Sequence record: MT028491.1
Strand: one strand, 5' to 3'
DNA: 64,000 nt
Of this stretch, positions 52,878 through 55,130 are shown piece after piece. The notes beneath the pieces are model-generated. The model saw only the letters and a list, made by a program, of their open reading frames with translations, was not told the DNA's origin and searched no databases. Each line of letters starts with the position of its first letter. The stretch's first letter is position 1. The translations under genes were made by a program, and so were the position numbers.

Positions 52878-53240
52878 ATGTTTTTGGGAATTACGGTTTT
52901 AATTTGTGGTGGCAGAGATTATGCCGATGCTGCAAAAGTGTATGATATTCTGGATTATATCCATAAAAAGGTTGGAATTGACGTTCTGATTAGTGGAGCG
53001 GCAAGAGGGGCCGATATGATCGGAATAAATTGGGCCGAAGAAAGAGGAGTCCGATGCTTAAAATTTCCTGCCAATTGGAAGAAATACAATAAAGCCGCTG
53101 GATTCATCAGAAATAAACAAATGGCAGAATGCGAACCTGATATTTGTGTTGCATTTTCTGGTGGAAGTGGAACCAATAATATGATAAAATTATGTGAACA
53201 ATACGGAATCAAATACAAAAGGTACGATTATGGGAAATGA
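52878..53240 (+). CDS. SLOG-superfamily protein (DUF2493-like)
   Basis: LICGGRDY, ISGAARGAD, ANWKKYNKAAGFIRNKQM, VAFSGGSGTNNM. Confidence 0.85.
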   Translation: MFLGITVLICGGRDYADAAKVYDILDYIHKKVGIDVLISGAARGADMIGINWAEERGVRCLKFPANWKKYNKAAGFIRNKQMAECEPDICVAFSGGSGTNNMIKLCEQYGIKYKRYDYGK

Positions 53241-53409
53241 TTATTTAGACGAATATAAAAAAGCATTGGGTAATTTTAATGCAGAAGATTATTTTGCCCA
53301 ATATAACAACCATTATGTTGAAGAAATGGTTAAATTTATGGCGTTTAAGAAACATATGGAAGATGTAAAAGAACGAAAGAGGAAACTTATGAAGGAAATT
53401 CTTCTATGA
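53230..53409 (+). CDS. Small hypothetical protein
   Basis: MGNDYLDEYKK...; AAAGG SD; overlaps the SLOG stop region. Confidence 0.55.
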   Translation: MGNDYLDEYKKALGNFNAEDYFAQYNNHYVEEMVKFMAFKKHMEDVKERKRKLMKEILL

Positions 53410-53510
53410 GTTTTGGTGTTCGTCCACCACCACCGCCACCTAAGACGAGTTTGAATACCAAACCTAAGACGCATGTAATCCTTCATCTAAAAAAAGGAAA
53501 GGTTACTTGA
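53406..53510 (+). CDS. 34-aa proline-rich basic microprotein (not in ORF track)
   Basis: MSFGVRPPPPPPKTSLNTKPKTHVILHLKKGKVT; ATGA coupling to the upstream ORF. Confidence 0.45.
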   Translation: MSFGVRPPPPPPKTSLNTKPKTHVILHLKKGKVT

Positions 53511-53520
53511 AAAATATTAA

Positions 53521-53606
53521 GCTAGTGATGACAAATGGGGAGTCCTGCCGCTCATAACGGTATATCCGAAAGGATCAAGTCGGTTCGATTCCGGCCACTA
53601 GTACCA
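53521..53606 (+). tRNA. tRNA with CAT anticodon and long variable arm (Met/Ile2 by anticodon, class II body)
   Basis: Acceptor GCTAGTG/CACTAGT, D stem GAC/GTC, anticodon arm TGCCG-CTCATAA-CGGTA, variable arm ATCC-GAAA-GGAT, T arm GTCGG-TTCGATT-CCGGC, A73 and encoded CCA. Confidence 0.9.
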
Positions 53607-53622
53607 TTTTTTATTTTTATTG

Positions 53623-53660
53623 TTGACATCAAACTTAACATCTGACATAACTTAATCATC
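53623..53660 (+). promoter_or_regulatory. Early sigma70-type promoter
   Basis: TTGACA-17 nt-CATAAC-TTAATCATC. Confidence 0.7.
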
Positions 53661-53688
53661 GGAAACAAACCAAACAAGGTTTAAGACA

Positions 53689-54024
53689 ATGGCTAAGAGA
53701 TTTACGAAACAGACTGACAAGGTAGTTGCTGAAACCATTCTCGCCCAAATGGGTGGCAAGCGTTTTGCAATGATGACCGGTGCCAAGAATTTCGTTGCTG
53801 GTGATTTGTCCCTTCGTTTCAACATTCCCGGCTCACTTACGAAGAAACACATCAACACGGTAATCGTCACTCTTGATGAAGCCGCTGATCTGTATGTGAT
53901 GGAATTCGGAAAGTTCTCTAAGAAGACAATGGAATTCACATCTATTTCGAAGGTGAAGGGTGTCTATTGCGATATGCTTGAAGATATCTTTGAAACAGAA
54001 ACCGGCCTTCTCACTCATTTCTAA
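53689..54024 (+). CDS. Conserved phage/plasmid-type hypothetical early protein
   Basis: TILAQMGGKRFAMMTGAKNF...ITLDEAADLY-like...VYCDMLEDIFETETGL pattern; AAGG SD behind an early promoter. Confidence 0.75.
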   Translation: MAKRFTKQTDKVVAETILAQMGGKRFAMMTGAKNFVAGDLSLRFNIPGSLTKKHINTVIVTLDEAADLYVMEFGKFSKKTMEFTSISKVKGVYCDMLEDIFETETGLLTHF

Positions 54025-54036
54025 AGGGGTAACGGA

Positions 54037-54489
54037 ATGAATGTTGCTTTGGCAAAAAAGGTGGTAGTTGGAATTCAATATTCCAACTCTTGTCATGGTA
54101 ATGGTAGGTATGATTTTTTTGTAAAGAGTGCCAAGACGGTAATCGAATCACTTGAATACATCAACATAATTGATGTCGTTTGGTTTTCTCATAAAAAAAT
54201 CGGATCAGTAATGCATATGACAAGAAAGGAATTTTTGGACCATGCTTTTATGGAACCGTTAACAGGTGGAGGGACAAACTTTCATTGTGTGTCGGATTTT
54301 ATTATTGATTGTGGATTAAATCCTGATTTGGTATTGGTTATGACCGACAAACCAATATCAATAATTGATTATCCAAAGATTCCTGAATTCGATAAAGCAA
54401 AACTCTTGTTCGTCTATCATGATTATAATGATGATCATCCTGATAGTTGTGGTAATATTCCAGAAATTTCAATTGTAGAGGGAAATTAA
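54037..54489 (+). CDS. Stand-alone vWA-like domain, degenerate MIDAS
   Basis: GIQYSNS (DxSxS position), GGGTNF, LVMTD. Confidence 0.55.
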   Translation: MNVALAKKVVVGIQYSNSCHGNGRYDFFVKSAKTVIESLEYINIIDVVWFSHKKIGSVMHMTRKEFLDHAFMEPLTGGGTNFHCVSDFIIDCGLNPDLVLVMTDKPISIIDYPKIPEFDKAKLLFVYHDYNDDHPDSCGNIPEISIVEGN

Positions 54490-54744
54490 ATGTCGATACT
54501 TGACGTGACTGGAACAAAGAGACTGGATAATCAAATGAAGCTTTCACAAGCTAGTGAACTTCTTTCTGCGCATGGTTATCTGGTAACAATAACCGATGGT
54601 GTAATGTTTGTTGATGATTGGTCTGGTCCAGTTGACCAGATACCCAAACTACCTATCAAAAATGATAAGGTTTCCCGGTCTGATGTTGAAGAGTTTCTTA
54701 AATGTGAGCCTGTCGATGTCGCAGAAAAAATACCTTGTTTTTAG
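54490..54744 (+). CDS. Hypothetical protein
   Basis: 84-aa ORF, GAGG SD. Confidence 0.65.
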   Translation: MSILDVTGTKRLDNQMKLSQASELLSAHGYLVTITDGVMFVDDWSGPVDQIPKLPIKNDKVSRSDVEEFLKCEPVDVAEKIPCF

Positions 54745-54747
54745 GTG

Positions 54748-54785
54748 TTGACTTAGGTTTAAGGTTAAGGTAAAACTTAATCATC
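54748..54785 (+). promoter_or_regulatory. Early sigma70-type promoter
   Basis: TTGACT-17 nt-TAAAAC-TTAATCATC. Confidence 0.7.
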
Positions 54786-54803
54786 AAAACCGGAGATAAA
54801 CCA

Positions 54804-55100
54804 ATGTTCAAAGTTGAATGTGCAAAATGCAATGGCAAAGGCGAAATCAAAGCTTTTTCTGGTATTGCTGGTGGCATTTGTTTTTCTTGTAACGGCAAAG
54901 GGTTCATCTGCCAAAAGAGCGCACCAAAGAAGTCCAAGAAATTTGCTGTTTCTGCTGTAAGAAAAGATGATAACACCGTTGCGGAAAACATTTGCACAAT
55001 CAACGCCATGAGTGAAACAAAAGCACTTCAAATGGCAATCGTACAGCTTTCAAGGGGAAATGGTTATTTTCCAGAAACAGCGACTGTTAGAGAAATTTAA
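54804..55100 (+). CDS. DnaJ-type zinc-finger (CxxCxGxG x2) early protein
   Basis: CAKCNGKG and CFSCNGKG; GGAG SD. Confidence 0.8.
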   Translation: MFKVECAKCNGKGEIKAFSGIAGGICFSCNGKGFICQKSAPKKSKKFAVSAVRKDDNTVAENICTINAMSETKALQMAIVQLSRGNGYFPETATVREI

Positions 55101-55106
55101 ACAACA

Positions 55107-55130
55107 AAAAGGGCCATTAAAGGCCCTTTT
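55107..55130. terminator. Bidirectional terminator at the island end
   Basis: AAAAGGGCC-ATTAAA-GGCCCTTTT between convergent genes. Confidence 0.8.

Follow-up and report, generated by a model that had tools for sequence, protein, structure and literature searches.

We analyzed a transfer RNA (tRNA) gene with a CAU anticodon in a window of 64,000 nucleotides, which corresponds to bases 1 to 64000 of the genome of Ochrobactrum phage vB_OspM_OC (MT028491.1; here called OC), a T4-like jumbo myovirus reported to carry 24 tRNA genes (PMC7139368). The gene, phiOC_p057, is already annotated in GenBank as tRNA-Met(CAT); its unusual shape goes without comment in the GenBank record and in the paper describing the phage (PMC7139368). 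ARAGORN detected exactly one tRNA in the window (positions 53521 to 53606, plus strand, with the anticodon cat at position 33 of the molecule), and this tRNA scored 32.9 bits with the Rfam model RF00005, for which the gathering score is 29. It is a real tRNA gene, and it belongs to a phage-specific family of CAU tRNAs with a conserved extra arm (i.e., a short helix in the variable region).

Fold of the CAU tRNA

The OC tRNA folds into a cloverleaf with a 7-bp acceptor stem, a 7-nt anticodon loop containing U33, and a T loop of the UUCRANY type (Table 1). Its acceptor pairs include G1·U72, C2:G71, U3:A70, A4:U69, and G5:C68. In the D arm, A13·A22 flank a 7-nt loop, AAUGGGG, in which G occupies the usual A21 position. 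U8 is near universal in tRNAs; A8 stands in its place here, and with G at the usual A21 site, the tertiary core does not contain U8 joined to A14 and A21. A preliminary description of this DNA, made from its letters alone, had listed an 86-nt molecule with ATCC, GAAA, and GGAT in a 16-nt variable region, a 3-bp D stem, A8, G1·U72, A73, and an encoded CCA end, and all of these elements are present in the sequence.

A phage-specific family

When GenBank phages and PLSDB plasmids were searched with the tRNA by blastn, only OC itself was returned at E values up to 10, and a near-exact tRNA pattern had no match in IMG/VR. With a broad pattern meant to capture every CAU tRNA whose variable region is long (CTCATAA, 19 to 32 nt, and GGTTCRANTCC), we obtained from IMG/VR at least 83 tRNA(cat) genes of at least 80 nt as called by ARAGORN among the matches listed, 3 of which show the odd features of the OC gene. 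We then defined a family pattern from the OC-type body, in which the anticodon was left as NNN and the D loop was partly fixed. It matched 22 contigs in IMG/VR, and the anticodon was CAT in all 22 even though this part of the pattern was free. In metagenomes, the same pattern matched 63 stretches, in which ARAGORN called 56 tRNAs (42 cat, 9 gtt, 4 ttt, and 1 ctt). The body sought in other phages, as the preliminary description had proposed, was thus found in the 22 IMG/VR contigs and in the 42 CAU tRNAs from metagenomes. No member was present among 185,579 species-representative bacterial and archaeal genomes, where the only two matches were both tRNA-Gln(CTG) according to ARAGORN. As far as the searched collections go, the family is phage specific, and OC is the only cultured phage with a family tRNA in the GenBank-derived collection. 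Our literature search turned up no account of phage CAU tRNAs with a long arm.

A covariance model built from the family (R1) separated its members from other tRNAs. Members scored 86.7 to 105 bits (OC, 92.3 bits), tRNAs for Asn and Lys on the same scaffold scored 60 to 74 bits, a paralogue with a short variable loop on contig L023 scored 66.8 bits, and all other tRNAs scored at most 56 bits.

Selection on the fold

Covariation was evaluated with 33 distinct family members, 23 modelled pairs, and 500 shuffles. Standard pairs filled 98.1% of the pair cells, and changes on both sides (i.e., compensatory changes) occurred at 19 of the 23 pairs. None of the 500 shuffles reached the observed value, and sliding the partners lowered pairing to between 33 and 49%. 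Selection acts on all five helices. In the extra arm, each of the three modelled pairs has undergone compensatory change (GC, CG, UA, and AU); its loop is mostly GNRA, and the junction on its 3' side reads C-R-A (C in 33, R in 33, and A in 32 of the 33 members). All three pairs of the D stem covary around an invariant loop (AAUGGGGA), an invariance that is in part imposed by the search pattern; the G at the usual A21 position is conserved along with the loop AAUGGGG, which is likewise partly imposed by the pattern. Four of the five pairs of the anticodon stem covary, the fifth (G31:C39) being present in every member, and both the anticodon loop CUCAUAA and A73 (33 of 33) are conserved.

The acceptor stem combines fixed and variable positions. 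G5:C68 is invariant (33 of 33) and A4:U69 nearly so (28 of 33), and positions 1, 2, 6, and 7 are free to vary. Pair 3:70 is U:A in 29 members, A:U in 4, and C:G in none, and 1:72 is paired in all 33, with Watson-Crick pairs in 27 and G·U in 6. A8 is conserved in 31 of the 33 members and is thus a trait of the lineage rather than damage; since A8 and a compact D loop are common among many phage isotypes, the two together represent a style of phage tRNAs and not a defect. The family scaffold therefore comprises A8, a 3-bp D stem, AAUGGGG, an extra arm of 3 to 4 bp capped by a GNRA loop, UUCGAUU, A73, and an encoded CCA.

Three other origins of the OC gene were rejected. A sequencing error in the anticodon conflicts with the CAU found in every IMG/VR relative retrieved with a free anticodon, a pseudogene conflicts with the covariation and the intact CCA, and an attachment-site remnant conflicts with a full-length gene in a virulent phage. 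Separately, G1·U72 together with A73 (53521 and 53602-53603) corresponds to acceptor features of the non-canonical tRNA-His of alpha-proteobacteria (PMC7590224). This likeness is probably a coincidence, as G·U occupies 1:72 in only 6 of the 33 members.

Amino acid identity

Metagenome matches showed that the family scaffold also occurs with other anticodons and that its discriminator base changes with them: with GUU, the scaffold has G73, and with UUU or CUU, it has A73. Asparaginyl- and lysyl-tRNA synthetases need these discriminators and rely on the anticodon. One body retargeted by its anticodon and discriminator fits charging that is matched to the anticodon, not an identity driven by the arm. 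The synthetases for Met (MetRS) and Ile (IleRS) also rely on the anticodon: MetRS charges native tRNA-Met and a tRNA-Val with an introduced CAU anticodon equally well, and tRNA-Ile2 with an unmodified C34 accepts Met until lysidine switches its charging to Ile (PMC9976931). Judged from these sequence patterns, the amino acid identity of the OC tRNA appears to be set by its anticodon and not by its extra arm. The gene very probably encodes a genuine translating CAU tRNA that is charged according to its anticodon, i.e., as tRNA-Ile2 or tRNA-Met.

A possible decoder of AUA codons

We give about an even chance to the reading that the tRNA is the phage's AUA decoder, a tRNA-Ile2 produced by way of the host TilS. 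The gene would be transcribed with the plus-strand island in which it lies, and the transcript would be trimmed to its encoded CCA end. Host TilS would turn C34 into lysidine, and A37 would become N6-threonylcarbamoyladenosine (t6A). IleRS would then charge the lysidine form, which would read AUA; copies escaping TilS would be charged by MetRS and would read AUG as Met, harmlessly. AUA is frequent in OC (10.5 per 1000 codons) and would be expected to be poorly served in its host, whose GC content (approximately 56%) is about 18 points higher than that of the OC genome (227,654 bp; 37.7% GC).

Several lines of evidence are consistent with a tRNA-Ile2. The family contigs are all AT rich (30 to 48% GC), with 8.5 to 30 AUA per 1000 codons. 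In 51 distinct family loci, the commonest partner tRNAs are Arg(UCU) (27 loci) and Leu(UAA) (20 loci); Arg(UCU) is also the commonest adjacent gene, and several contig stretches carry only the family tRNA and Arg(UCU). This company favors tRNA-Ile2; the three would be decoders of A-rich codons (AGA, UUA, and AUA). A tRNA-Ile gene likewise stands next to tRNA-Arg in phage 933W (ileZ-argN-argO, according to its tRNA annotation lines). The CUCAUAA loop, A37, A38, A73, and the elongator type of the OC tRNA are all features expected of tRNA-Ile2. C3:G70 is usual in bacterial tRNA-Met and tRNA-fMet, in which A3:U70 is reported never to occur (PMC1635315). tRNA-Ile2 has no C3:G70 and admits A3:U70 or G3:C70, and the family, without C3:G70 and with four A3:U70 members, agrees with this. 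U43 is also frequent in the family, often as G27·U43, as in tRNA-Ile2 of Escherichia coli (PMC2500205).

A second group of phage CAU tRNAs with an extra arm provided a further clue. Its members have A8, a 3-bp D stem (GCC/GGC), the D loop GTAT(T)GGTTGCA, and a GAAA-capped arm, and their acceptor stems bear the canonical tRNA-Ile2 signature C4:G69/C5:G68, often with G3:C70. They occur alone or with Arg(UCU)/Leu(UAA) and, among the matches listed, never on the same stretch as the OC family (loci L105, L113, L008, L014, L015, L065, L087, and L089). A tRNA-Ile2 signature in the same niche favors the same identity for the OC family. Within OC itself, two other CAU tRNAs lie in the main tRNA cluster. 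One of them has C1xA72 and is initiator-like, and the other (CAT_a, 150946-151023) has a Met-type acceptor, GGCGATA, with C3:G70, G4:C69, and A5:U68. The only other Ile tRNAs of OC have the anticodon GAU.

Other observations weigh against a tRNA-Ile2. The acceptor determinants of TilS are C4:G69 and C5:G68 in E. coli and G3:C70 and C4:G69 in Burkholderia (PMC11947777, PMC2500205). These pairs are absent from the OC tRNA, in which positions 3 to 5 are occupied by other pairs that are nonetheless a conserved part of the family acceptor stem. A search of OC and the family loci for a TilS-like PP-loop open reading frame (SGGxDS motif) found none, so the host TilS would have to accept the tRNA. A long "tRNA-Ile(UAU)" gene is present in 14 of the 51 family loci and, if functional, could read AUA. 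CAT_a and the T4 tRNA-Ile share 81% identity over positions 8 to 64 and have the G27xA43 mismatch in common; given this resemblance, CAT_a could be the tRNA-Ile2 of OC, and the tRNA studied here would then be a tRNA-Met. Finally, expression, lysidinylation, charging, and any role of the extra arm are inferred.

The main rival to tRNA-Ile2 is an elongator tRNA-Met, which we consider possible but the less probable of the two. In this case, C34 would be unmodified or acetylated, MetRS would recognize the tRNA through CAU and A73, AUG would be read, and the arm would be a lineage trait without effect on identity. Given the anticodon-based identity of MetRS (PMC9976931), this is the default for a tRNA with CAU and A73, and both GenBank and ARAGORN label the gene as Met. 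The consistently paired 1:72 is a mark of elongators, and the OC tRNA combines it with CAU and A73. The lack of canonical TilS acceptor determinants throughout the family, the long tRNA(UAU) genes alongside it, and the possibility that the T4-like CAT_a is the tRNA-Ile2 would all be accommodated as well. However, a phage would gain little from an additional tRNA-Met, yet the family tRNA is often the sole tRNA or is accompanied by Arg(UCU) only. No member has C3:G70, and the four with A3:U70 have a pair that is reported to be absent from tRNA-Met (PMC1635315). The C3:G70 usual in bacterial tRNA-Met and the C27:G43 of E. coli tRNA-Met are replaced in OC by U3:A70 and U27:A43, and C27:G43 occurs in just 5 of the 33 members. 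Furthermore, CAT_a already provides OC with a Met-like acceptor (GGC..., A5:U68), and the parallel extra-arm group in the same niche has the signature of tRNA-Ile2.

Role of the extra arm

The arm is short and stable, is capped by a GNRA loop, and has no conserved loop sequence, which argues for a structural or steric role rather than for sequence-specific recognition. To place it among other phage tRNAs, we counted bystander tRNAs on the fetched contigs, excluding CAU, Leu, Ser, and Tyr and removing pattern-selected genes. Forms of at least 82 nt made up 55 of 408 tRNAs with U36 (i.e., those reading codons that start with A) and 15 of 683 others (odds ratio, 6.9; P = 5e-13), in a count of uncurated ARAGORN calls from related contigs with no phylogenetic correction. 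The enrichment, which involves Asn, Lys, Thr, and Ile(UAU), is a lead and not a result. A further reading, which we regard as rather unlikely, is that the arm is an adaptation and no mere passenger: AT-rich phages would possess a distinct structural class of tRNAs for codons starting with A (CAU, Asn, Lys, and Thr, sharing the scaffold of A8, compact D loop, and extra arm), and the arm would either protect them against cleavage or inactivation by a host enzyme or alter which modification enzymes (e.g., TilS) act on them.

Another explanation, based on host conflict, is improbable; the nuclease resistance raised in the preliminary description is neither favored nor contradicted by our results. 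It holds that the arm, A8, and the compact D loop allow a Met or Ile tRNA to escape a defense that cleaves or inactivates tRNAs or, alternatively, that the molecule is a decoy or regulator that does not decode. The retention of the arm by compensatory evolution in a family confined to phages is compatible with such a role, as is the recurrence of extra arms on phage CAU, Asn, Lys, and Thr tRNAs and their enrichment with U36. Phage tRNAs that counter tRNA-targeting defenses are known in other systems. However, the anticodon loop has the canonical sequence CUCAUAA and shows no escape-type changes, and no defense or anti-defense gene is consistently linked to the tRNA in the loci examined. Our analysis identified no nuclease that targets tRNA-Ile2 or elongator tRNA-Met, and the simplest role for a molecule so complete and well paired, with A73 and CCA, is that of a tRNA in translation.

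Relationship to tRNAs for Leu, Ser, and Tyr

The preliminary description had assigned the CAU anticodon to a class II (Leu/Ser/Tyr-type) body, and its lead idea was a recently switched tRNA that puts Leu at AUG. More generally, a class II body with a switched anticodon would be charged by the synthetases for Leu (LeuRS), Ser (SerRS), or Tyr (TyrRS) and would deliver Leu or another residue at AUG or, after lysidine modification, at AUA. A73 (53603), the Leu discriminator, is compatible with such an origin, as is the layout of the arm (1 unpaired nucleotide, a 4-bp stem, a 4-nt loop, and 3 unpaired nucleotides). LeuRS ignores the anticodon (PMC9976931), and nematodes provide a precedent: their nev-tRNAs are of class II, bear Gly or Ile anticodons, and accept Leu in vitro (PMC3333845, PMC4300185).

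The body of the OC tRNA, however, is not of the Leu type. A covariance model built from 38 class II Leu tRNAs on the same phage contigs (R2) gave it 35.3 bits, compared with 65 to 86 bits for real Leu tRNAs (OC Leu-CAA, 82.3; OC Leu-TAG, 79.1). Unrelated tRNAs lie in the range of 37 to 47 bits (Ile, 46.7; Trp, 45.7; Val, 41.6), so the score of the CAU tRNA is background. This isotype-score check, suggested by the preliminary description, thus revealed no likeness to Leu tRNAs. U8, G9, and a U at the 3' junction are invariant in the 38 phage Leu tRNAs, and the CAU family has A8, U9, and C-R-A instead. Beyond A73, Leu identity in E. coli depends on the A15-U48 pair, A20a, a U8:A14 core, and G18G19 placed as in GAAUUGGUAGA (PMC9976931). 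The OC tRNA lacks a core of this type: it has A8 and no A20a, A15 faces A48 (junction C-A-A), and the D loop is 2 nt shorter than that of Leu tRNAs. In pairwise alignments, the nearest sequences outside the family were other CAU tRNAs, and Leu tRNAs remained at background.

Serine identity is contradicted by A73 in place of G73, by C2:G71 (an antideterminant for SerRS), and by an arm of only 3 to 4 bp, those of OC's own Ser tRNAs (91 nt) being longer. Tyrosine identity is contradicted by position 35, which is A and not the U of a GUA anticodon. In addition, the lineage is diverse and subject to purifying selection, with CAU in all of its members, and the GUU version of the scaffold takes G73, as Asn identity requires. 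Class II charging is therefore very unlikely, and recoding of a codon to leucine is not supported, as nothing suggests it. The shape that the preliminary description recognized is indeed class II-like, whereas the Leu/Ser/Tyr assignment of the body falls, and with it the recent switch, in place of which we found a stable phage lineage that keeps CAU on a non-Leu body. Its fall-back suggestion of an unusual Met or Ile tRNA, perhaps modified with lysidine, agrees with this outcome. Its premise that long arms belong to Leu, Ser, Tyr, and selenocysteine (Sec) tRNAs applies to cells but not to phages, whose contigs often carry CAU, Asn, Lys, and Thr tRNAs with long arms.

Least probable of all is a phage initiator tRNA: CAU, a run of three G/C pairs adjoining the anticodon loop (C29:G41, C30:G40, and G31:C39), the weak G1·U72, and the many initiator-like long-arm CAU tRNAs on phage contigs could point to one, but 1:72 shows no mismatch in any of the 33 members (Watson-Crick in 27), 29:41 and 30:40 vary, the stem does not have the G29G30G31:C39C40C41 orientation, 11:24 (A:U in initiators) is A:U in OC but mostly G:C in the family, and OC already has a CAU tRNA with C1xA72. 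The preliminary description had denied both initiator hallmarks, correctly for C1:A72 and wrongly for the three consecutive G/C pairs, which do exist; its view that the tRNA is not an initiator still holds, because 1:72 is paired and the G/C pairs have a non-initiator orientation.

Other irregular tRNAs in these phages

Additional phage tRNAs with unexpected shapes were observed. At least 41 long-arm CAU tRNAs are initiator-like (IMG/VR loci L008 to L125, e.g., L013, L017, L022, L025, L032, and L093), with acceptors of the (C/U)GCGGGG type and a 1:72 mismatch or a weak U1:A72; extra arms are thus also carried by initiator-like tRNAs of phages. Genes for "tRNA-Ile(UAU)" of 91 to 94 nt with irregular D regions were found in L132 to L134, L136, L139, L142, and L143 and in metagenome loci. 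The loop of their long arm (CAGAUUA or UAGAUGA) stays conserved where the bodies differ, a hint that it is recognized by its sequence. Clusters in L028, L127, L139, and L142 to L144 contain 91-nt tRNA-Ser genes with the anticodon ACT (A34), and the loops of their variable arms (GTTAATAGC) are similar to those in the Ser tRNAs of OC.

The converse also occurs. The "tRNA-Leu(TAA)" of OC, which lies outside the window on the minus strand (MT028491.1, 154952-155029; L003, 40952-41029), is 78 nt long and has a short variable loop. It thus presents a Leu anticodon on a class I-shaped body, which still scored 50.3 bits with the Leu model. Leu(UAA) genes of 75 to 77 nt are also present on the family contigs L097, L131, and L133. 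In these phages, the long arm has been lost from Leu(UAA) and gained by the tRNAs for CAU, Asn, and Lys.

Comparison with known tRNAs

The OC family shares with tRNA-Ile2 (ileX and ileY of E. coli, tRNA-Ile of T4, and ileZ of 933W) the CUCAUAA loop, A37, A38, A73, and a paired 1:72, as well as the frequent U43 or G27·U43, the lack of C3:G70, and an occurrence in AT-rich phages beside Arg(UCU)/Leu(UAA). It differs in having a 3- to 4-bp extra arm in place of a 5-nt variable loop, A4:U69 and G5:C68 in place of C4:G69 and C5:G68, and A8, a 3-bp D stem, and a 7-nt D loop, and its lysidine is only a prediction. With elongator tRNA-Met, the OC tRNA has CAU, A73, and a paired 1:72 in common; the extra arm, A8, and neighboring rare-codon tRNAs set it apart, as does the lack of C3:G70 and C27:G43. 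Bacterial class II tRNAs (Leu, Ser, and Tyr) resemble the family in the long arm, the 3-bp D stem, the unpaired 13·22, the length of 83 to 86 nt, and, for Leu and Tyr, A73. They do not share its A8/U9 (U8/G9 in Leu) or its anticodon, and the family lacks A15-U48 and has a shorter D loop and an arm shorter than that of Ser tRNAs.

Two groups of unusual tRNAs are also comparable. The nev-tRNAs of nematodes are, like the OC family, class II in shape, class I in the isotype of their anticodon, and conserved within a lineage (PMC3333845, PMC4300185). They are, however, true Leu-type bodies charged with Leu in vitro, whereas the OC body is not of the Leu type and its sisters match the discriminator to the anticodon. 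The allo-tRNAs and other irregular tRNAs are likewise non-canonical, with long variable arms and a metagenome or phage origin (PMC5389517). Allo-tRNAs have acceptor/T branches of 8/4 or 9/3 and a Ser identity conferred through the arm; the OC family has the standard 7/5 branch and a short arm.

Genomic setting in OC

The CAU tRNA is the sole tRNA in a small plus-strand island (Table 1), and the remaining 23 tRNA genes of OC form one minus-strand cluster (140995-156718) located 87 kb away. The island is flanked by the minus-strand baseplate genes gp25 and gp5, and the tRNA is probably transcribed together with it. A terminator-like hairpin at the end of the island divides it from the minus-strand gene p062. 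The nearest phages, Sinorhizobium phages phiM12 and phiN3, whose gp25 is 40% identical to that of OC, have neither the island nor a tRNA within the matching gp5-gp25 interval, and a search of IMG/VR with gp25 found no close relatives of OC. Among the island proteins p053 to p063, we found no linkage to the family tRNA elsewhere, with the single exception of a p054 homologue. The p054 protein (120 amino acids; annotated as "DprA-like") is of a small, Rossmann-like GGxD...GAD type, and its homologue (39% identical) lies about 10 kb from a family tRNA on contig L134/L182, with no other island gene in common. The putative gene p056, an open reading frame of 34 amino acids with a run of seven prolines (MSFGVRPPPPPPPKT...), ends 10 nt before the tRNA.

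Table 1. Features of the CAU tRNA gene and its surroundings in the OC window
Feature	Position	Strand	Description	Basis
Whole tRNA(CAU)	53521-53606	+	86 nt with encoded CCA; GCTAGTG A T GAC AAATGGGGA GTC C TGCCG CTCATAA CGGTA T-ATCC-GAAA-GGAT-CAA GTCGG TTCGATT CCGGC CACTAGT A CCA	ARAGORN, Rfam, family model R1 (92.3 bits), GenBank
Acceptor stem, 5' strand	53521-53527	+	GCTAGTG; pairs with CACTAGT (53596-53602)	Sequence
Linker between acceptor and D stems	53528-53529	+	A8, U9	Sequence
D arm	53530-53544	+	3-bp stem GAC/GTC around AAATGGGGA	Sequence
Anticodon arm	53546-53562	+	TGCCG/CTCATAA/CGGTA; U33, A37, A38	ARAGORN
Anticodon	53553-53555	+	CAT	ARAGORN
Variable region	53563-53578	+	16 nt: U44, extra arm, then unpaired C-A-A	Sequence
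Extra arm	53564-53575	+	ATCC-GAAA-GGAT, 4 bp, GAAA cap	Sequence
T arm	53579-53595	+	GTCGG/TTCGATT/CCGGC	Sequence; covariation at 2-3 stem pairs
Acceptor stem, 3' strand, and 3' end	53596-53606	+	CACTAGT, A73 (53603), encoded CCA (53604-53606)	Sequence
Plus-strand island	52878-55130	+	p054-p056, tRNA, p058-p061	GenBank annotation, open reading frames, terminator scan
p054	52878-53240	+	"DprA-like" gene	
p056	53406-53510	+	Putative gene	
Bidirectional terminator-like hairpin	55107-55130	Both	Perfect 9 bp, T runs on both strands; end of island	

Implications

In textbooks, a long variable arm in bacteria is restricted to the tRNAs for Leu, Ser, Tyr, and Sec. The conserved extra arm on a CAU tRNA and on its Asn and Lys sisters departs from this limit; the family occurs on dozens of phage contigs and is absent from all 185,579 cellular genomes searched. 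The availability of OC as a cultured phage makes bench tests of the family possible. Annotation pipelines label genes of this kind as tRNA-Met; if they encode tRNA-Ile2, estimates of the match between phage tRNAs and codon usage are wrong. Should the arm be adaptive, it would let a phage go on reading AUA, AAY, and AAR codons even where host tRNAs fail.

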